From the NCBI RefSeq assembly GCF_011386835.1, contig NC_088802.1, positions 1,550,001-1,614,000 of the forward strand: a stretch of DNA of 64,000 nt, in the 5' to 3' direction. Within the stretch, counting starts at the first letter, position 1; each line of letters begins with the position of its first letter. Shown here piece by piece: positions 13,783 to 35,960 of this stretch. A program made the position numbers and the translations under genes. Source of the stretch: Chrysemys picta bellii (lineage: Eukaryota). The notes below the pieces were generated by a model, which saw only the letters and a program-made list of their open reading frames with translations, ran no database searches and was not told where the DNA came from.

Positions 13783-21451
<7,669 letters not shown>

Positions 21452-21649
21452 CTTGCGGGGGTTGGCTCCGCTCGTCTCTTCTCCTGCGAAGCAGCCGGGC
21501 TGGGGGGGGGGGGACTAGCGGCAGCGGCTCCAGCGTCACCGCCCCCCCCCCAAACGAGCTGGTACCCGGATCCCCCCCCCCCCCAGCGCCTGAGCTGCCG
21601 AGACAGGGACCCGCCAGCCAGAGAGACGGGGCAGGAACAATCGCCCCAC

Positions 21650-22900
21650 AGCCCCCCCGCTCCGCTCCACCGGTGCCCCTCACTCCCGACCCGCAGCCCC
21701 CCCGCTCCGCCGGTGCCCCTCACTCCCGACCCGCAGCCCCCCGCTCCACCGGCACCCCTCACTCCCGACCCGCAGCCCCCTCCTCCGCCGGCGCCCCTCA
21801 CTCCCGACCCGCAGCCCCCCCCTCCGCCCGTGCCCCTCACTCCCGACCCGCAGCCCCCCGCTCCACCGGCACCCCTCACTCCCGACCCGCAGCCCCCTCC
21901 TCCGCCGGTGCCCCTCACTCCCGACCCGCAGCCCCGCCGCTCCGCTGGAGCCCCTCACTCCCGACCCGCAGCCCCCCCGCTCCGCCGGCGCCCCTCACTC
22001 CCGACCCGCAGCCCCCCGCTCCACCGGCACCCCTCACTCCCGACCCGCAGCCCCCTCCTCCGCCGGCGCCCCTCACTCCCGACCCGCAGCCCCCCCGCTC
22101 CGCCGGCGCCCCTCACTCCCGACCCGCAGCCCCCCTGCTCCGCCGGCGCCCCTCACTCCCGACCCGCAGCCCCCCTGCTCCGCCGGCGCCCCTCACTCCC
22201 GACCCGCAGCCCCCTCCTCTGCCGGCGCCCCTCACTCCAGACCCGCAGCCCCCCCGCTCCGCTCCGCCGGTGCCCCTCGCTCCCGACCTGCAGCCCCCTC
22301 CTCCGCCGGCGCCCCTCACTCCCGACCCGCAGCCCCCCCGCTCCGCCGGCGCCCCTCACTCCCGACCCGCAGCCCCCCTGCTCCGCCGGCGCCCCTCACT
22401 CCCGACCCGCAGCCCCCTCCTCTGCCGGCGCCCCTCACTCCAGACCCGCAGCCCCCCCGCTCCGCTCCGCCGGTGCCCCTCGCTCCCGACCTGCAGCCCC
22501 CTCCTCCGCCGGCGCCCCTCACTCCCGACCCGCAGCCCCCCCGCTCTGCCGGTGCCCCTCACTCCCGACCCGCAGCCCCCTCCTCTGCCGGCGCCACTCA
22601 CTCCCGACCTGCAGCCCCCCCGCTCCGCCGGTGCCCCTCACTCCCGACCCGCAGCCCCCTCCTCTGCCGGCGCCCCTCACTCCCGACCCGCAGCCCCCAG
22701 CCCGGCCGGTGCCCCTCACTCCCGACCCGCAGCCCCCTCCTCCGCCGGTGCCCCTCACTCCCGACCCGCAGCCCCCAGCCCAGCCGGTGCCCCTCACTCC
22801 CGACCCGCAGCCCCCCCCGCTCCGCCGGTGCCCCTCACTCCCGACCCACAGCCCCCAGCCCGGCTGGTGCCCCTCACTCCCGCCCCGCAGCCCCCTCCTC
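21650..22900. repeat. Minisatellite family A array upstream of PRRT1 exon 1
   Basis: About 40-bp unit ctccgccggcgcccctcactcccgacccgcagccccc, roughly 30 copies. Confidence 0.92.
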
Positions 22901-23892
22901 CTGTCGCCGGAGTGAGGGGAGGCCTCGTACAACGAGGAGGCGGGGCCACAGAGGGGGAGGAGCCTGCACTGGAGGGGTGGGGCGGGGCGATTGGGGCAGG
23001 AAGGGATCCCAGGGGAGGGGGGCTCTGCCCTCCGTCCGTTCATTCCCCCCATGGGCCGTGACGCCGCCCAGCCCCCCATTGCCCCATAGCGGCACTATGG
23101 GCTCAGGGCTGCAGGGAGCCGGGGGCAGTAGGGTCATGGGGGTCACTAGGAGGCACCGCACCCCCAGGATGGGGGAGATCAGGGGGGTCCCTGGGGGCAC
23201 AGCACCCCTGGGAAGAGGGGGCTCAGGGGGTCACTAGGAGGCACCACACCCCCAGGAAGGGGAGGATTAGTAGGCACCGTGCTGCCAGGACGGGGGGGTC
23301 CAGGGGCTGCCACACCCCTGAGAAGGGGGAAATCAGGGGGAGTCACTGGTAGGCACTGTGCCCGCAAAAAAGGGGGTCATTGGGGGTCCCAAATGACCAC
23401 AAAGTGGGGGGCACCACAACCCCAGGAAGGGGAGGCTGGGGCGGGTTACTGAGGCACCACCCCCGGGAAGTGGGTGGGTTGGGGGTCACTAGGGGCATCG
23501 CACCTCAGGGACGGGGGCCTTCAGGGGGGTCCCACACTCAGAGCCGACACCACATAGCTACAAATCGCACCAGGATTTTTATTAATTTTCCGTCCATCAG
23601 AAAATAAGTTAGATTTGTCTCCCAATTACCTGTGTGAATGGGGGGGGGGCTGCCCCCGTGCAGAGGGGATTGTGGGTAAGGAGGGGAGGGGGCACAGAAG
23701 GGGATTGTGGGTAGGATGGCAGGGGACGCATAGAGGCTTCTGGGTAGGGAGCGAGGGGGCGCAGAAGGGGATGTTGGGTAATGGGGGGGTGTCAGAGGGG
23801 TTCTGGGCAGGGGGATTGTGGGTAAGGGGGCAAGGGGTGCTGCAGAGGGGCATTGTGGGTAGATGGAGTGTGTGGTGGCAGGCGGGGGGCCG

Positions 23893-26800
23893 TCAGGGCT
23901 GCCCCTCCACGTCCCCGCCCCCCTCCCCGTCAGTGCTCCCCGGGTTCTCTCCCAGCAGGCGGGCGAGCTGGTCCAGGACCTGCTGCAGGGTGCGGGCCAG
24001 GCGCTGGGCGTGGGTCTCACGGCAGCAGTTGAAGGCTGTGATGGCAAAGTTGACGTGGGCGTCCAGCGGGTTGTAGCAGACCCCGTAGCCGTCCGGCACC
24101 TGCGGCCCGTAGATCATCAGGCAGTCGGAGCGCGAAGCCACCTGGCAGGGTGTGGGGAGAGCGGGGTGAGGGGGGCGGACAAGTCCCCTCCCCCTGCCTG
24201 CACACCAGCGTCCACCCAACCTGAACCCCCCACCGCTGATGACCTCCACTGAGGAGGCAGGATAAGAACCCACTATGGCTGCCTGCGAAGAGAGCTCCCC
24301 CCAACACCCCTGGGCAGGGAGAGGGGAGGGAGCAGGAACAGGTGTTAGTTGGGGGGCAGAGGCCCATATCTGCCTAGTGAGCAGCCATCAGTGGATGGCA
24401 ACGCTACAGGGGGTATCTGGTGCGGGGGAGGGTGTAGCTGGGGGGCCATACCTGCTTGGTAAGCAGCAGGTAGCACGTGGTGATGGTGTAGGGGCGCCGT
24501 GGGGCGGGTGAGGGTTAGTTGGGGGGCGCCGTGGGGCAGTACCTGGCCGGTCAGCAGCCGGCAGTGCGTGGCGATGGCGTAGGGGCGCCGTGGGGCGGGT
24601 GAGGGTTAGTTGGGGGGCACCGTGGGGCAGTACCTGGCCGGTCAGCAGCCGGCAGTGCGAGGCGATGGTGTAGGGGCGCCGTGGGGCGGGTGAGGGTTAG
24701 TTGGGGGGCTCCGTGGGGCGGGTGAGGGTTAGTTGGGGGGCGCCGTGGGGCGCCATGGGGCAGTACCTGGCCGGTCAGCAGCCGGCAGTGCGTGGCGATG
24801 GCGTAGGGGCGCCGTGGGGCGGGTGAGGGTTAGTTGGGGGGCGCCGTGGGGCAGTACCTGGCCGGTCAGCAGCCGGCAGTGCGTGGCGATGGCGTAGGGG
24901 CGCCGTGGGGCGGGTGAGGGTTAGTTGGGGGGCGCCGTGGGGCAGTACCTGGCCTGTCAGCAGCCGGCAGTGCGTGGCGATGGTGTAGGGGCGCCGTGGG
25001 GCGGGTGAGGGTTAGTTGGGGGGCTCCGTGGGGCGGGTGAGGGTTAGTTGGGGGGCGCCGTGGGGCGCCGTGGGGCAGTACCTGGCCGGTCAGCAGCCGG
25101 CAGTGCGTGGCGATGGCGTAGGGACGCCGTGGGGCGGGTGAGGGTTAGTTGGGGGGCGCCGTGGGGCAGTACCTGGCCGGTCAGCAGCCGGCAGTGCGTG
25201 GCGATGGCGTAGGGGCGCCGTGGGGCGGGTGAGGGTTAGTTGGGGGGCGCCGGGGGGCAGTACCTGGCCGGTCAGCAGCCGGCAGTGCGTGGCGATGGCG
25301 TAGGGGCGCCGTGGGGCGGGTGAGGGTTAGTTGGGGGGCGCCGTGGGGCAGTACCTGGCCGGTCAGCAGCCGGCAGTGCGTGGCGATGGCGTAGGGGCGC
25401 CGTGGGGCGGGTGAGGGTTAGTTGGGGGGCACCGTGGGGCAGTACCTGGCCGGTCAGCAGCCGGCAGTGCGAGGCGATGGTGTAGGGGCGCCGTGGGGCG
25501 GGTGAGGGTTAGTTGGGGGGCTCCGTGGGGCGGGTGAGGGTTAGTTGGGGGGCGCCGTGGGGCGCCATGGGGCAGTACCTGGCCGGTCAGCAGCCGGCAG
25601 TGCGTGGCGATGGCGTAGGGGCGCCGTGGGGCGGGTGAGGGTTAGTTGGGGGGCGCCGTGGGGCAGTACCTGGCCGGTCAGCAGCCGGCAGTGCGTGGCG
25701 ATGGCGTAGGGGCGCCGTGGGGCGGGTGAGGGTTAGTTGGGGGGCGCCGTGGGGCAGTACCTGGCCTGTCAGCAGCCGGCAGTGCGTGGCGATGGTGTAG
25801 GGGCGCCGTGGGGCGGGTGAGGGTTAGTTGGGGGGCTCCGTGGGGCGGGTGAGGGTTAGTTGGGGGGCGCCGTGGGGCGCCGTGGGGCAGTACCTGGCCG
25901 GTCAGCAGCCGGCAGTGCGTGGCGATGGCGTAGGGGCGCCGTGGGGCGGGTGAGGGTTAGTTGGGGGGCGCCGTGGGGCAGTACCTGGCCTGTCAGCAGC
26001 CGGCAGTGCGTGGCGATGGCGTAGGGGCGCCGTGGGGCGGGTGAGGGTTAGTTGGGGGGCGCCGTGGGGCGCCGTGGGGCAGTACCTGGCCGGTCAGCAG
26101 CCGGCAGTGCGTGGCGATGGTGTAGGGGCGCCGTGGGGCGGGTGAGGGTTAGTTGGGGGGGCGCCGTGGGGCACCGTGGGGCAGTACCTGGCCGGTCAGC
26201 AGCCGGCAGTGCGTGGCGATGGTGTAGGGGCGCCGTGGGGCGGGTGAGGGTTAGTTGGGGGGCGCCGTGGGGCAGTACCTGGCCGGTCAGCAGCCGGCAG
26301 TGCGTGGCGATGGCGTAGGGGCGCCGTGGGGCGGGTGAGGGTTAGTTGGGGGGCGCCGTGGGGCAGTACCTGGCCGGTCAGCAGCCGGCAGTGCGTGGCG
26401 ATGGCGTAGGGGCGCCGTGGGGCGGGTGAGGGTTAGTTGGGGGGCGCCGTGGGGCAGTACCTGGCCGGTCAGCAGCCGGCAGTGCGTGGCGATGGCGTAG
26501 GGGCGCCGTGGGGCGGGTGAGGGTTAGTTGGGGGGCGCCGTGGGGCAGTACCTGGCCGGTCAGCAGTCGGCAGTGCGTGGCGATGGCGTAGGGGCGCCGT
26601 GGGGCGGGTGAGGGTTAGTTGGGGGGCGCCGTGGGACAGTACCTGGCCGGTCAGCAGCCGGCAGTGCGTGGCGATGGCGTAGGGGCGCCGTGGGGCGGGT
26701 GAGGGTTAGTTGGGGGGCGCCGTGGGGCAGTACCTGGCCGGTCAGCAGCCGGCAGTGCGTGGCGATGGTGTAGGGGCGCCGTGGGGCGGGTGAGGGTTAG

Positions 26801-29800
26801 TTGGCGGGCGCCGTGGGGCAGGTGAGGGTTAGTTGGGGGGCGCCGTGGGGCGCCGTGGGCAGTACCTGGCCGGTCAGCAGCCGGCAGTGCGTGGCGATGG
26901 CGTAGGGGCGCCGTGGGGCGGGTGAGGGTTAGTTGGGGGCGCCGTGGGCAGTACCTGGCTGGTCAGCAGCCGGCAGTGCGTGGCGATGGCGTAGGGGCGC
27001 CGTGGGGCGGGTGAGGGTTAGTTGGGGGGCGCCGTGGGGCGCCGTGGGGCAGTACCTGGCCGGTCAACAGCCGGCAGTGCGTGGCGATGGCGTAGGGGCG
27101 CCGTGGGGCGGGTGAGGGTTAGTTGGGGGGCGCCGTGGGGCAGTACCTGGCTGGTCAGCAGCCGGCAGTGCGTGGCGATGGCGTAGGGGCGCCGTGGGGC
27201 GGGTGAGGGTTAGTTGGGGGGCGCCGTGGGGCGCCGTGGGGCAGTACCTGGCCGGTCAACAGCCGGCAGTGCGTGGCGATGGCGTAGGGGCGCCGTGGGG
27301 CGGGTGAGGGGTTAGTTGGGGGGCGCCGTGGGGCAGTACCTGGCCGGTCAGCAGCCGGCAGTGCGTGGGCGATGGCGTAGGCCGTGTCCATGAAGATCCC
27401 GGGCAGCCGCTGCCCGTCCCGATGGCCGCCAGCTTCAGTCCCAGCAGGTGCCGGTCGATGCCCTGCCCGGCCAGCACCTGCGGGGAGAGGGTCAGAGCCC
27501 GGACGCCTGGGTCCCGGCCCTGCACACCGTCCCAGCCCGGACGCCTGGGTCCCAGCCCTGCCCCACCCCCACCCATGTGGAGAGAAGTTCAAAGCCCGGA
27601 TGCCTGGGTCCCAGCCCCGCCCCACCCCTGCCCATGTAGGGAGAAGGTCCCAGCCCGGACGCCTGGGTCCCAGCCCCGCCCCACCCCCTACCCACGTGGG
27701 GAGACGGTCCCAGCCCGGACGCCTGGGTCCCAGCCCAACCCCACCCCTGGCCATGTGGGGAGAGGGTCCCAGCCCGGCGGGGGAGGGGGGGTTGGCTCAC
27801 CTGTTCGGTCCTGGCGCTCTGAGATTCCACCGCCGCCTGCAGCAGGGACAGCGTCTCCGCGTCCTGGGGGCCGGGGGAGCCGGGTCAGAATGGGGGGTGC
27901 TGGGGGGCAGGGGGACGGGGTAAGGGCAGGGCGTGGGGGGGGGTTACCTGGCCGTGGGGCGTGTCCTGGGGGCCGGGGGAGCCGGGTCAGAATGGGGGGT
28001 GCTGGGGGGCAGGGGGACGGGGTAAGGGCAGGGCGTGGGGGGGGGGTTACCTGGCCGTGGGGCGTGTCCTGGGGGCCGGGGGAGCCGGGTCAGAATGGGG
28101 GGTGCTGGGGGGCAGGGGGACGGGGTAAGGGCAGGGCGTGGGGGGGGGGTTACCTGGCCGTGGGGCGTGTCCTGGGGGCCAGGGGAGCCGGGTCAGAATG
28201 GGAGGTGCCGGGGGGCAGGGGGACGGGGTAAGGGCAGGGCGTGTGGGGGGGGTTACCTGGCCGTGGGGCGTGTCCTGGGGGCCGGGGGAGCTGGGTCAGA
28301 ATGGGGGGGTGCCGGGGGGCAGGGGGACGGGGTAAGGGCAGGGCGTGTGGGGGGGGTTACCTGGCCGTGGGGCGTGTCCTGGGGGCCGGGGAGCCGGGTC
28401 AGAATGGGGGGTGCCGGGGGGCAGGGGGACGGGGTAAGGGCAGGGCGTGGGGGGGGGTTACCTGGCCGTGGGGCGCGGGGGGGGTTACCTGGCCGTGGGG
28501 CGTGTCCTGGGGGCCGGGGGAGCCGGGTCAGAATGGGGGGTGCTGGGGGGCAGGGGGACGGGGTAAGGGCAGGGCGTGTGGGGGGGGTTACCTGGCCGTG
28601 GGGCGTGTCCTGGGGGCCGGGGGAGCCGGGTCAGAATGGGGGGGTGCCGGGGGGCAGGGGGACGGGGTAAGGGCAGGGCGTGGGGGGGGGGTTACCTGGC
28701 CGTGGGGCGTGTCCTGGGGGCCGGGGGAGCCGGGTCAGAATGGGGGGTGCCGGGGGGCAGGGGGACGGGGTAAGGGCAGGGCGTGTGGGGGGGGTTACCT
28801 GGCCGTGGGGCGTATCCATGGCCCGGGCCAGGCGCAGCACCGGGGGGGGCCGCGGGGCGCACGGCGTCCGTCCGGCCCAGGTGGAAGCGGCGAAGTGACA
28901 CCACCTCGCTGGTGGCGCAGAGCGAGCCGTGGGTCCTGGGGGGAGACGGGGGTCAGCCCCACACCAAACCCCCCAGTGCCTCACCTCCACCCGCCCCACA
29001 CAGACCCCCCCCACTGCCCCACCCCCAGCCTGGTCCCCCAGGGCTGCCCCCGCCCATACCCGCCAGGGCCCCCCACCTGTAGTAGGCCAGCTGCAGCGCC
29101 ACCTGGAAGAGGGAGTCGGGGCGCAGCCCCCAGCGCTTGGGGAGCCCCTGCCCGAACCCCCGGTAGGTGAAACAGCTGATGTCCAGGTCTGTGATCAGGC
29201 TGGGGGGAGAGAGGTGTTAGATGGGGGGCTGGGCCCTCCGCCCCCCAATAGCGCCCCCTCTTCCCCTCTCCCCACCCCTCCATCCCATCCCAACCTCCTG
29301 CTCCCCAATAGCCCCCCCAACCCTCTGCCCTCCCAACAGCCCCCCCCCTCTCCCCACCCCTCCACTCCATCCTAACCTCCTGCTCCCCAATAGCCCCCCC
29401 AACCCTCTGCCCCCCCAACAGCCACCCTCTTCTCCTCTCCCCACCCCTCCACCCCATCCCAACCTCCTGCTCCCCAATAGCCCCCCCAACCCTCTGCCCT
29501 CCCAACAGCCCCCCTCCTCTCCTCTCCCCACCCCTCCACCCCAATCTCCTGCTCCCCAATAGCCCCCCACCCCTCCCCAACTTTCCCCTCCCCCTTCACC
29601 CTCCCTCCCATGCCCCCTGCTGCCCCCCCGGCTCTCACATGTCCAGGTTCTGTTTGGCTCGCTCGATGTCCCACTGGATCTCGGGGGTGATGTAGAAGTA
29701 CAGCTTTGGGGGCAGGGGCAGGGGCGTCATGGGGGCGCGTGCCGTGTCGGGGTCCTTGCTGCCGGAGACCCCCGGGTCAGATGGGAGGATCCCCCCCAAA

Positions 29801-32800
29801 TCACCATGCTGGGGGCACATCACTGCACCCCAAAAACAGCCTCCCCAGGTAGCATATTCTGCCCTTTCCCCCGCCACAACCTCCCTCCCCTTCCCAAGGC
29901 AGAAGGTTCCACCCCTTTCCCTACCCCCCAGGCAGGAAGTCCCGCCCCTTTTCCCATTCCCAAAACAGGAAGTTCTGCCCCTCTCCCCCACCAGCCTGCT
30001 CCAGACCCACAGAGGTGGTACAGGGGATCCCTCACCCCAATTCCACTCCCCCACACATGCTTCCCATTTTGGGGTCCCTCCACTACAGGACAAAAACAGG
30101 GGATCTGGGGCTGCTGCTCCCTGAGAATGGACCTCCAATTACCCTCCCACCAGTTCAGGGGCACCTCAACACAGGTGTAATGTGGGGTACAGGGAATGCC
30201 ATGCCATAGGGAAGGGTGAACCCCACACCCCATCTTGGGGAGCCCCAACATTGGCACATTTGGGGTACTGCCTTGTGGGGAGATAAAACCCCCAAATCTC
30301 CCCCTTCTCTCCATTATAAGGGGGTCCCTAATTCAGAAGAATATTGGGGGGCTGCGTTATAGGGAGATGTGACCCCCAAATCCTCTGTTTCCATTGGGTC
30401 CCCCCAGGCTGGCTCTGTGGGATTGATCAGGTGGTCAAAGGTCTGGGGGCACCCTGAATGTCCTAGTTTAGGGCTTACCAGTAATCGAGGACATGGTCGA
30501 TGATGGTTGCTATGGGGGCCCCGTCGGCCACGGCCTGTTCATACAGCACCCCACAAACGCCGTCCTCCCCCAAGATGAACTGGGGGCAGGGAACGAGAGA
30601 GCAGGTACACAAGACAGGAAATCCCGCCTATCCCTTCCACCCTAATCCCAAAACAGGAAGTCCCGCCCCTTTTCTTGCCACAAAACAGGAAGTCCTGCCT
30701 CCCTACACACAGTCCCACCCCTGCAGTCCAAACTAGGAAATCCTACCTCCCTATCTACATTTTCTTCACCGCCGGAAAATTAGGAAGTCCCGCCCCCACC
30801 CAACACTCCAAGACAGGAAGTCCCGCCCCCTAGCTCCCAAAGCAGGAAGTCCCGCCCCCACCTCACCTGCAGGGTCTTGTCGAACCAGCGGTTGCCGCTG
30901 TTGGAGTAGCTGCCGCCCCCGTGCAGCATCTGGGCGGCGACGCGGCTGGGGTAGCGCTCGTCCGACACCTTCAGCACCGGGGCGTCGAGGCAGACGGTGA
31001 AGAGGCTGTGCTGGATGCACCGGGCCGACTCCCGGTTTAGCCGGTCTGGAGGCGGGGTCACCGGACGGGTCAGCACCACCCCCTCACACCAAGCAGGATT
31101 CGAACCCAGAACTTCCCTGCTTTGGGGTCCCACCCTTGTTACACCCCATTCACTGCTGTCCTCCAGGCATCGGGGTCCCCCTTTAGCCCCTTCCAAAGCA
31201 GAAGTCCCGCCTCCTTTCCCCCTCCCCCATTACATCTTGAGATTACCTGGACCCCCAGCCAGGTCCCCCAGGCCAGGGGGCCCCCCCGTACCTCTCACAA
31301 CGGTGCTGCAGACCTGGCCCAGCTTTTGGGGTCCCTGGGCCCCCCCGTACCTCTCATGAGGGTGCTGTAGGCCTGGCCCCAGGTGTGCCGGTGATCCCCC
31401 GTCAGCACCCCCAGCGGCTCCTTGTCCGTCTTCCACGACAGCCCCCGGACGCGCTGCAGCTGCAGGTGCAACTGGTCCACGGTGAGGGGGGTCCCGTCGC
31501 TGTTGTACACCTCCACCTGGAAAAACTGGGGGGGCGGGAGTCAGGGTCAGCCTCCGCAGGGCCCCCGGAATCTGCCCAGTGACCCCCCCAGCCGCCAGGG
31601 ACCTCCCGGAGCTCCCGAGGACCCCCCCGTCCCCACACAGACACCCCGAAACACCCCATTTCCCCCCACATACAGCCCAGAACCCCTCAGGAGTCAGCCA
31701 GCCCCACTCCCTACATGAACACCCCCCAGGTCCCCCCACCCCGGGAATCCCAGACACGGGGCTGTTCTGGGGGAGTCAGAGGGGGAGGTGCAGAGGGGCC
31801 CATGCCTGGGGGTGACCTGGACAAAGGGGGGCTTGGGGGTATCACATGAGGGGGTTCTGGGGGGCACATTTCCCACGGGGTCCCAGGGCAGGGCCGGGTC
31901 TGGAGTCCCGGGGGGGAGGGGGTCCCGCGGCACGGCCGGGTCTGGGGGTTCTGGAGACCCCAGGGCAGGGATAGCTCTGGGGGGCTGGGGTCCCAGGGGG
32001 GAGGGGGTCCCGCGGCACGGCCGGGTCTGGGGTCCCGGGGGGGTAGTCCCACGGCACGGCCGGGTCTGGGGTCCCGGGGGGGGGGAGGGGGTCCCGCAGC
32101 ACGGCCGGGTCTGGGGGTTCTGGAGACCCCAGGGCAGGGACAGCTCTGGGGGGCCGGGGCCCCGGGGGTACCTGGAAGTTGCGGACGACGGTGATGAAGG
32201 TGGGGGCCCGGCGCCCCGGGACAGGCAGCAGGAGCCCGTCATGCTTGGGGCCGGGCAGGCGGCAGGAGGCGAAGAGGCTGCTGTACTGGGCCATGCACTG
32301 GGGGTGCCCCCCCCGGTACTCCACCAGCAGCGCCTGCCTGGGGGGGGGGGGGGGAGTGAGAGACATGGGGCAGAGCGACCCCCCCCAGTCCCGTCCCACC
32401 ACTCCCCCACCCCCAGGGGCCCCCCCAGCATCATCCCTCCCCACCCCTCCGGGTCCTGTATAGCCCCTCCCCTGCCCCTTCCCCAACCCCCGATATCTAG
32501 TCCCCCCAATATAACCCTCCTTCCCCCATCCCTCCCCCAATACTGGGGGGGGGTGTCAGGCACTTACTGATCAATCTTAGCCTTGAAATCCAGCACCCCC
32601 GCGATGAGCTTCGCCGCAAACCTGGGGGTGGGGACGGGGGACGTCACAGATCCGCCGGTGCCCCTCACTCCCGACCCACAGCCCCCACTAGCCCAGCCCA
32701 GCCCAGCCCCCCCCAGCTCTGCCGGTGCCCCTCACTCCCGACCCGCAGCCCCCGCTAGCCCAGCCCAGCCCCCCCCAGCTCTGCTGGTGCCCCACACTCC

Positions 32801-34935
32801 TGACCCGCAGGCCCCGCTGGCCCAGCCCAGCCCCGCCCCAGCTCTGCCGGTGCCCCTCACTCCCGACCCGCAGCCCCCGCTAGCCCAGCCCTGCCCCCCC
32901 CAGCTCTGCCGGTGCCCCTCACTCCCGACCCGCAGCCCCCGCTAGCCCAGCCCTGCCCCCCCCAGCTCTGCCAGTGCCCCTCACTCCCCAACCCGCAGCC
33001 CCTGCCAGCCCAGCCCTGCCCCCCCAGCTCTGCCGGTGCCCCTCACTCCCGACCCGCAGCCCCTGCTAGCCCAGCCCTGCCAGTGCCCCCCACTCCTGAC
33101 CTGCAGCACCCCGCCAGCCCCCCCATCCCCCCAGCTCTGCCGGTGCCCCTCACTCCCGACCCACAGCCCCTGCTAGCCCAGCCCTGGGCTCCCGCCATCC
33201 CCCCCGCCAATACCCACCGGAGCTGCCCCCTCCAGTCGCTGTAGTCCTGTTTGGGGAGCACGACGGCCGGGCTGGAGTGGACGGCGAGGGGTAAGCGGCT
33301 CTCCAGATACGCGCTCTGCACCCACCAATCCGAGAGCTGGGGTGGGGGGGCGGGGAGGACAGACCAGGGTTAGAATCGGGGGGCGGGGGTCATGGGGCCT
33401 TTGACCCGAGCTCTCCCCTGCAGCTTCCCCCCCCCGCACCCCAGGCTGAGACCTGGCACAACTTCATTGCACTGATGGGCATGAGCAGAGTCCCCAGCAG
33501 GGGGTGCTGTCCCGGGGCAGCCATCCCACTCCCATCTCCTGTCCCGGATGCCAGGGTCCCCACCATCGCCCCCGTGTTCCCCCCCAAAAGCTCCAGGGAC
33601 CCTCACAGGACTCCTGGGGTCCCCCACCTTTCACCCCTCCCCCAAACTCCTGGGTTCTGCCTGCTCCCAGCCCTGCCCAGGACACCTGGGTCCCCCCCCC
33701 CCCCCCCCCGCAGCTCCCTAACCCCCGGACACCTGGGTCCCCCAAGCTCTACCCAGTTCTCCATGCGGGCGGCTCTGCGCTCCAGCTGGGCCTGCAGCCG
33801 TTCCCCCTCTCCGCCGGGCGCCCCGAACTCCTGCACCAGTTCCCGGGTTTCCTCCAGCTCCTCGGGCGTGACCAGCACCTCCAGCGAGCGCAGGTACCGC
33901 TCCAGCGTCTGGGCCAGCGGGGGCACGGGCTGCCGGGGCAGCGGGAAGGACGAGGCCAGACATCGCGACGGGGGCCCCTGCAGGGACGGGAACGGCTCGA
34001 CTGCACCAAGGGCCACGGGCCCACCTGCCGCCCTGGGCACAGGTGGCTGCCCCCAAAGCGGGAACTGCAACGGGAAAGTCACCAATGCACCACCCAGAGC
34101 CTGGCATCACGCAGCGTCCGGCGCCGGCCTACACAACGCCCCAGGAGCAGCCGGCGTTGAAATGCACCAAGAGCAACCTCGGTTCTCGGCGTCCGGCGCT
34201 GGAAATGCAACGGCCTGCATGCAACGTGGCACCTGCAACCCGCAGACCCAGGGGGGCCCGTCTCCGGCCACGTGCTGGCCAAGCGGCGGGCGCTGCCACC
34301 CTCCACCTTAACCGCGGGTGGCAAAAGCAGACATGCACCAACGGCCCCCCTTGCAAGGTGCAGCCAGAGCGGTCACCGCAATTGCGAACTTGCAATTGTA
34401 ACCGTCACAAATGGGTGTGTGTGTGTGTGGGGGGGGGGGTGTCCCACTTCTAAAGCGGCCAATGCAACAGCCCCCCCCCCGGACCCAAGTTGCAGGCGTC
34501 AAAGGTGCCCCAGGTGGCGGCTTTGCCGATGCAACCGTCAGGGCCCCTCGCTGCAGTTTGCGGAGGTGCCAAAGGGCCGCACGCGCCTCCTGCCGCAAAT
34601 GCACCATCCTGCGCGCTTGCAAAACCGCCCCTGCGCGTCCCCCCCCCCGGAGCGAGGCACGTGCAGCCGGATTCCCCCCGCCCCCGCTTGCAAAGGGGGA
34701 AACGCGCCCCCCCCCCCGGGCTGCAAGTTGCAAAGTTGTAACCCGGCCGGGTGGGTCTGCCCCCCCCCGGGGGGCTTTGCACGGCCGCGCGGCCCCTTGG
34801 CAAGGCCCCCCCCGCACTTCTGCGGCCCAGCAGCTGTTTGCAACGGGGCCCCCCCCGCCCCCCACTCACCGGGGCGCGTGACCCCGGCGCTCGCCTGCAG
34901 CCCCAGGGGGGCAGGAGGAACCTCCAGCGCCCCAT
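23893..34935 (-). CDS. Carnitine O-acetyltransferase-like protein (CRAT paralog) with substituted catalytic His; 14 coding exons
   Basis: Exons 34935-34870, 33977-33753, 33336-33218, 32621-32568, 32337-32172, 31525-31351, 31045-30867, 30579-30479, 29758-29639, 29199-29077, 28935-28799, 27863-27801, 27477-27340 and 24141-23893. Motifs LPRQPVPPL, LSDWW, GNRWFDKTLQ, ALQLAYY, FHLGRTD, DRHLLGLK, PDGYGVCYNP. AATAAA (minus) at 23583-23578. Homopolymer indels in exons 11 and 13. Confidence 0.9.
24440..27340 (-). repeat. 91-bp tandem array (about 30 copies) duplicating the CRAT-like exon 13 3' end and splice donor
   Basis: Sense unit gtactgccccacggcgccccccaactaaccctcacccgccccacggcgcccctacgccatcgccacgcactgccggctgctgaccggccag; variants of about 101 and 133 bp. 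Confidence 0.95.
27864..28798 (-). repeat. About 103-bp tandem array: 9 intron copies separated by 8 18-nt exon-like segments in CRAT-like intron 11
   Basis: Each unit reads gtaacc...ctgac...ggcccccag|GACACGCCCCACGGCCAG|. Segments start (plus coordinates) at 27948, 28051, 28154, 28257, 28361, 28489, 28592 and 28696. Confidence 0.92.
32650..33185. repeat. Minisatellite family A in CRAT-like intron 3
   Basis: Same core repeated. Confidence 0.88.
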
Positions 34936-35139: not shown

Positions 35140-35480
35140 ACATGGGGGGGCTGGGCGCCAGGACTCCTGGGTTCTCTCCCGGCTCTGGGAGGGGAGTGGG
35201 GGCTGGTGGGTTAGAGCAGGGGGGGCTGGGCGCCAGGACTCCTGGGTTCTCTCCCCAGCTCTGGGAGGGGAGTGGGGGCTGGTGGGTTAGAGCAGGGGGG
35301 GCTGGGAGCCAGGACTCCTGGGTTCTCTCCCCAGCTCTGGGAGGGGAGTGGGGGCTGGTGGGTTAGAGCAGGGTGGGCTGGGAGCCAGGACTCCTGGGTT
35401 CTCTCCCCAGCTCTGGGAGTGGAGTGGGGGCTGGTGGGTTAGAGCAGGGGGGGCTGGGAACCAGGACTCCTGGGTTCTCT
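35140..35480. repeat. Minisatellite family B array upstream of the CRAT-like start
   Basis: About 65-bp unit, 5 copies. Confidence 0.85.
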
Positions 35481-35629
35481 CTCCAGCTCAGCCGCAGACC
35501 GTCTTTGGGACTTTGGGCCAATCACGGAATTGCTCCCTGCCCCAAGTGGAGATAATGATCCTTCCTGTGTCTAGTGAGACTGTGAGCTCCTAGGCTCCGG
35601 GGACCGGCTCTCAGAGAGTCACACCCCGT

Positions 35630-35960
35630 CGTGATGGGGCCCGATCTTGGCTGGGGTCTGGGCGGCGCCCGGCGGGCCTCGGCCCCGATCTTGGTTGGAG
35701 TCTGGGCGGTGCCCGGCGCGACAGGGCCCTTATCTCGGTTGGGGTCTGGCCGGCGCCCGGCCCAACGGGGTCCCGATCTTGGCTGGGGTCTGGGCGGAGC
35801 CCGGCACGACGGGGCCCCGATCTCGGCTGGGGTCTGGGCAGAGCCCGGCACGACGGGGCCCCTGATCTCGCCTGGGGTCTGGGCGGAGCCCGGCACGACG
35901 GGGCCCTGATCTCGGCTGGGGTCTGGGCGGAGCTCGGCACGACAGGACCCCGATCTTGGC
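35630..35960. repeat. About 44-bp CpG-rich tandem repeat
   Basis: ccgatctcggctggggtctgggcggagcccggcacgacggggccc, about 8 copies. Confidence 0.85.

Follow-up and report, generated by a model that had tools for sequence, protein, structure and literature searches.

The human ABCA7 gene carries, in intron 18, a VNTR (variable number tandem repeat) that starts at the exon donor and repeats that donor in each unit; the first donor is normally used, and a minor isoform retains one unit by means of a downstream donor (De Roeck et al. 2018, PMC5954066). At 25 bp, that unit offers neither an acceptor nor a branch site, so that no internal exons arise, and retention of one unit shifts the frame. In the Rogers model and the work of Hellsten et al. 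(2011, PMC3265369), a tandem duplication over splice motifs yields a new donor-acceptor pair and the frame is restored; the duplicated sequence is an exonic AGGT, and the result is an intron at a new position. The LPA kringle IV-2 coding VNTR (PMC11462820) contains whole exons with their splice sites and its copy number sets protein length, which makes it the known precedent for a VNTR-encoded size ladder. The LPA unit, however, measures 5.6 kb and holds two normal-sized, always-included exons, and its ladder lies between alleles, not splice forms.

Here, we analyze an array in intron 11 of a carnitine O-acetyltransferase-like (CRAT-like) gene of the turtle Chrysemys picta bellii. All positions without a locus label refer to the window, i.e., the whole stretch of 64,000 nucleotides that was analyzed (GCF_011386835.1, NC_088802.1, 1,550,001 to 1,614,000). 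In contrast to the ABCA7 repeat, the turtle unit joins an entire intron to 18 exonic bases that keep the frame; the likeness to ABCA7 lies in an annotated turtle form that gains 27 nt from the array (the +27 form) and in the donor-only arrays of Natator, Mauremys, and Terrapene. With the Rogers and Hellsten scheme the array shares a tandem duplication spanning splice-site motifs, but here an existing intron was amplified, its position is unchanged, and the by-products are potential micro-exons. These 18-nt segments recall the N1 exon of c-src, also 18 nt long and in frame, which is said to have been found by Black in 1991 to be skipped by default for steric reasons, its splice sites being too close together. 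N1 is a single conserved enhancer-regulated exon with long flanking introns, whereas the putative turtle cassettes are eight identical, species-specific copies with flanking introns of 85 nt. Our limited literature search found no account of an array whose every unit carries a whole functional intron together with in-frame exonic bases.

The host gene

Chrysemys picta bellii sequence GCA_011386835.2 (CM062329.1; L006) matches window positions 36935-21893 exactly. RefSeq names the host gene "carnitine O-acetyltransferase-like" and annotates four isoforms of it on the same assembly (XP_065420117 to XP_065420120), with 14 coding exons running from 34935 to 23896. Precomputed Pfam annotation assigns PF00755 (carnitine/choline acyltransferase) to these products and to all of their relatives. 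The gene groups with fish "carnitine O-acetyltransferase b" and its shark, squamate, and turtle counterparts, which we refer to as cratb-type. Its catalytic motif, encoded by exon 8 (30481-30579), reads YEQ and not YEH, and the catalytic histidine is therefore absent. YEQ is also found in the cratb-type sequences examined from sharks, gar, most teleosts, squamates, and turtles, with one teleost entry keeping YEH; canonical CRATs retain the histidine.

Orthology with canonical CRAT was considered and rejected, in view of the gene's place among fish "carnitine O-acetyltransferase b" sequences and of the genes around it. Upstream of it in relatives lies a palmitoyl-thioesterase-like (Palm_thioest) or tenascin-like gene, and downstream of it a CD225-domain gene (L001 1-705 and 16544-22983; L002 1-9253 and 13381-20015). 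Such a setting resembles the MHC class III region and not that of CRAT, and it suggests that the gene is an ancient paralogue which mammals have lost.

Anatomy and reading frame of the array

Tandem Repeats Finder (TRF) revealed that minus-strand positions 27864-28798 repeat every 103 bp, in about 9.3 tandem copies with 97% matches, reported as one block at 27861-28475 (103-bp period, 6.0 copies, 97% matches, score 1144) and another at 28477-28817 (103-bp period, 3.3 copies, score 652). With head-to-tail, high-identity units in the range of 10-100+ bp, the array is a minisatellite. A motif walk along the minus strand uncovered 10 GTAACC donors (first intron base at 28798, 28695, 28591, 28488, 28461, 28360, 28256, 28153, 28050, and 27947), alternating with nine cccccag acceptors (first exon base at 28713, 28609, 28506, 28378, 28274, 28171, 28068, 27965, and 27863). 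The array thus resolves into nine complete introns (GT...AG, 83-86 nt), with eight 18-nt spacers of one and the same sequence, GACACGCCCCACGGCCAG, between them. Together they make up a composite intron 11 of 935 nt (27864-28798, minus strand), in which the spacers are hybrids of the neighbouring exons. It is bordered by exon 11 (28799-28935, minus strand; 137 nt as assembled, with acceptor and donor mapped, equivalent to residues 473-518 of RefSeq X1/X2) and by exon 12 (27801-27863, minus strand; 63 nt, DAETLSLLQAAVESQSARTEQ), the first 3 nt of which belong to the repeat unit.

Each unit spans the final 15 nt of exon 11, the intron in full, and 3 nt from the start of exon 12. Since both limits of the block fall within codons of the flanking exons and it includes 18 exonic nt, every internal copy has intact splice signals and an in-frame 18-nt pseudo-exon. 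Every copy also contains gtaacc, ctgac, and cag, so a donor and an acceptor flank each added copy; the A of the branch-like ctgac motif lies 24 nt upstream of the AG, and a C-rich tract follows it. All of the following features are on the minus strand. Intron unit 1 (28714-28798; 85 nt, gtaacc...cag) and potential micro-exon 1 (28696-28713; 18 nt) were placed by the motif walk, and seven further segments identical to the latter lie at 28592-28609, 28489-28506, 28361-28378, 28257-28274, 28154-28171, 28051-28068, and 27948-27965. Intron unit 9 (27864-27947; 84 nt) leads up to the genuine acceptor of exon 12. All eight 18-nt segments finish in an AG that directly abuts a GT (CCAG followed by GTAACC), a juxtaposition of the recursive type. 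Unit 4 is irregular, as an extra 27-bp partial duplication (28462-28488) gives it a second donor (28488 and 28461). The units otherwise differ at few sites, and a roughly 335-bp higher-order period is present.

These results confirm, from TRF, the motif walk, and the unit boundaries, what a preliminary description had proposed, namely complete-intron units with eight in-frame 18-nt cassettes, each cassette a hybrid of the exon 12 start and the exon 11 end. Its unit length of about 103 bp stands; its picture of a uniform array has to be given up in view of the additional duplication and donor in unit 4, and the AM-to-LL spacing, given there as 14 residues, is 12.

Both 18 and 27 are multiples of three, and the two kinds of segment fall within the length range of micro-exons (27 nt or less, or as much as 51 nt under looser definitions, and frame-preserving). 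Translations bore out the earlier proposal that any number of cassettes keeps the frame, with no stop codon; when every cassette is skipped, the conserved protein results. Which peptide a cassette encodes depends on a C8 run in exon 11 (28842-28849) that is C7 in Malaclemys, Terrapene, Mauremys, and Natator and that shifts the frame toward the end of the exon. A cassette reads GHAPRP in the literal frame of the assembly and DTPHGQ, the hexapeptide originally described, in the frame homologous to the other turtles, so the DTPHGQ reading requires the private C8 to be an assembly error; the 27-nt segment reads VTPPAPHGQ in the homologous frame.

Three 1-nt homopolymer indels that are private to the assembly lie within 1.6 kb of the array, namely the C8 run and two in exon 13 (27340-27477, minus strand), at G3 27418-27420 and C3 27367-27369. 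The first two compensate each other, and the four RefSeq proteins read through them, which leaves an out-of-frame stretch of about 56 residues where other turtles have the conserved ...VLRLARAMDTPHGQ DAETLS...IDRHLLGLKL. The third is bypassed in RefSeq by a 93-nt gap without canonical splice borders that continues at copy 2 of an adjacent repeat. Because each of the three occurs in a homopolymer and in this assembly alone, assembly error is the likelier reading. Searching the PDB with exon 11 translated in the assembled frame gave no match, an outcome that the frameshift in that exon explains. The Natator assembly (L001) has private homopolymer indels of its own in the same CRAT-like gene.

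Origin of the array and comparison among turtles

Malaclemys terrapin, of the same subfamily, has between the same exons a single 87-nt intron of the same sequence (L004 4367-4453, gap-free), and its RefSeq protein joins AMDTPHGQ straight to DAETLS; the repeat unit is accordingly a working intron on its own. The copy state is one in Malaclemys and nine in Chrysemys, and the ninefold amplification is young and specific to the Chrysemys lineage, given the single same-sequence intron of Malaclemys. Its youth also follows from the few differences between units and from flanking introns that are about 98% identical between the two genera. In the aligned units, units 7-9 share variants with the single Malaclemys intron. 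The intron occupies a position common to Malaclemys, Mauremys, Natator, and Terrapene, and the array is an amplification of a pre-existing intron and not an intron at a new position.

The corresponding intron measures ~375 nt in Terrapene and ~800 nt in Mauremys and Natator. In all three genera this boundary bears arrays of other kinds, degenerate and composed of the exon 11 tail plus the donor without acceptors (Terrapene, L005 5030-5330; Mauremys, L003 10640-11450). The exon 11/12 boundary is thus a minisatellite hotspot of long standing. The Ensembl Terrapene model P0214 reads the degenerate copies as coding sequence. None of the 18-nt cassettes occurs in Malaclemys, Terrapene, Mauremys, or Natator, and the cassettes are thus not conserved among these turtles. 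The cassettes show zero differences in 144 nt, against about two expected at the rate of the intron part (an estimate). Selection on the identical cassettes was considered as an explanation and rejected, as this difference is not significant.

Other repeats occur in the gene. Intron 13 (24458-27381, minus strand) contains about 30 copies of a 91-bp unit that includes the final 42 nt of exon 13 with its GT donor, but no separate acceptor, and the RefSeq models splice from the donor in copy 2 (27245-27274). Arrays of a similar kind in Natator, in Pangshura, and in a Chelonoidis model indicate that donor-bearing repeats at exon 13 are old or recurrent. Numerous other minisatellites, with periods of 39-169 bp, lie in introns and flanks at 19658-22895, 27529-27777, 29234-29575, 31877-33215, and 35144-35960, in a region of 65-75% GC.

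Splicing of the array

Two junction types are annotated. In RefSeq X2, exon 11 runs straight into exon 12 (28799 to 27863), and X1, X3, and X4 insert 27 nt (28488-28462) between them. Both types use the final acceptor, passing over all 18-nt segments downstream, and no 18-nt cassette is found in any of the four RefSeq isoforms annotated here. The ladder of isoforms in 18-nt steps that had been suggested as possible for the locus is consequently not seen among these isoforms, which show a direct join or +27 only, but the missing cassettes are weak evidence because aligners place identical cassettes, with eight map positions, poorly. On this assembly, the +27 form calls for an acceptor AG positioned 18 nt downstream of the usual one, immediately before a GT, or else for a different array in the RNA donor, such as one with the 27-bp duplication beside exon 11, and internal array sites are to that extent not inert. 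RefSeq proteins of Mauremys, Gopherus, and Carettochelys join the two exons directly, from which it follows that pairing of the first donor with the last acceptor across donor-rich arrays is the norm in this gene.

We also looked at sequencing runs. In small runs, probably of RNA, 0.22-0.30 of the words sampled from 27330-29200 are present, a value close to the exon share of ~0.18 and far under the expectation for a retained array, which argues against retention; in run X15, which is listed as RNA, the fraction is 0.13 for 23800-31600, about the exon share. Three protein searches found no close ORFs among Logan transcripts, the turtle matches being genome-annotation proteins only. Two metagenome matches to the mRNA-only junction lie in unrelated GC-rich contigs and were rejected as chance. 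The region is covered by a single Chrysemys assembly, and older Chrysemys models lack exons 10-13.

We favour, with a probability of roughly 0.6, the explanation that a young Chrysemys minisatellite is mostly removed as one composite 935-nt intron and that the 18-nt segments are mostly skipped. The array would have begun with the tandem duplication of a 103-bp segment (exon 11 tail, ~85-nt intron 11, and exon 12 start) and have grown to nine copies by amplification. Pairing of the last acceptor (27864/27863) with the donor of exon 11, or with the additional one in the irregular unit, would give the conserved protein, and a minor in-frame product would carry the 27-nt piece of the irregular unit. 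That skipping dominates, and that it does so because the 18-nt segments may be too short for simultaneous 3' and 5' splice-site complexes, is what we infer. Proximity counts against this explanation: the introns of the gene are short and GC-rich, and in such introns the closest donor and acceptor across the intron pair preferentially (PMC9225289), which would favour unit-by-unit splicing with inclusion of the cassettes.

Such unit-by-unit splicing defines the first rival explanation, which we consider unlikely yet worth keeping in view: each 85-nt unit would be removed separately at an appreciable rate, leaving one to eight 18-nt cassettes per mRNA and as many hexapeptides in a surface loop, with a maximum set by the copy number of the allele. 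The intact and identical splice signals of every unit speak for it, as do the function of the same sequence as an intron in Malaclemys, the open frame at any cassette number, and the presence in RefSeq of a 27-nt in-frame array piece. For the intact Mauremys orthologue, AlphaFold modelling (mean pLDDT 75.9, pTM 0.80) puts the insertion point, the exon 11/12 junction between Q514 and D515, within the 7-residue loop 509-515, where confidence dips, between helices 499-508 and 516-537; insertions there would probably be tolerated. The model has no bearing on whether cassettes are made. Against separate removal stand the same-assembly isoforms, with their two junction types that pass over downstream cassettes, and the general experience, exemplified by c-src N1, that 18-nt exons are normally skipped unless they have dedicated enhancers. 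The absence of the cassettes from Malaclemys and all other turtles examined leaves them without conserved function, and the lack of differences in their 144 nt is not significantly below what the intron part predicts. The stronger claim, that the array is a copy-number-dependent isoform generator in which each allele yields a ladder, in six-residue steps, of a catalytically altered CRAT paralogue, is slightly more doubtful still.

The AG-GT juxtaposition at all eight segments raises another, rather improbable, course, a traceless stepwise removal of recursive-like type. Splicing to the AG at a segment end would regenerate the exon 11 donor each time, and the +27 form would be the footprint of the second donor; indeed, on this assembly the 27-nt cassette has canonical GT-AG borders only with the distal AG at 28489/28490. 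That distal AG, however, lies 42 nt away from the branch-like motif and is preceded by a well-placed AG, and splicing normally takes the first AG that follows a branch point. Known recursive splicing takes place in very long introns, and the host intron measures only 935 nt, and the +27 form is equally explained by an allele with a 27-bp duplication in its first unit. Very improbable is the view that the array is an assembly artefact or mis-sized, with copies or the 27-bp position being long-read errors in a GC-rich region. Although the private indels, the non-canonical gap around one of them, and reliance on a single assembly of the species fit that view, consensus errors alter homopolymer lengths and do not make nine ordered copies. 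Structured unit variants with their higher-order period and the Malaclemys-type units 7-9 also contradict an artefact, and so do the arrays at the same boundary in related turtles and the irregular 27-nt piece in RefSeq coding models. Equally hard to credit is a decaying gene copy in Chrysemys with the array as neutral pseudogene debris. The indels shift the frame and the catalytic His has become Gln, but the indels are all homopolymeric and private to the assembly, with mutual compensation of the first two, and Gln is common across the cratb-type sequences examined and so is no sign of recent decay. The exons, moreover, are 97-100% identical to those of Malaclemys and free of stops, and their words are present in probable RNA runs.

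With removal of the array as one composite intron as the preferred explanation, the locus has consequences both for annotation and for the study of splicing. Homopolymer indels have placed an out-of-frame segment of ~56 residues in RefSeq proteins, which is an annotation hazard, and identical micro-exons would escape standard read mapping. Nine near-identical working minimal introns in a row, with 18-nt in-frame spacers, constitute a natural experiment on splice-site pairing, in which nearest-neighbour pairing across short introns is set against steric exclusion of very short exons. The array indicates that a minimal intron can grow elevenfold in one lineage without harm to the protein and that the same amplification can seed new coding micro-exons. 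A ladder of isoforms from this array is possible, at modest odds; if it is real, the turtle gene would be a natural case of whole-intron amplification that creates coding micro-exons in one step.
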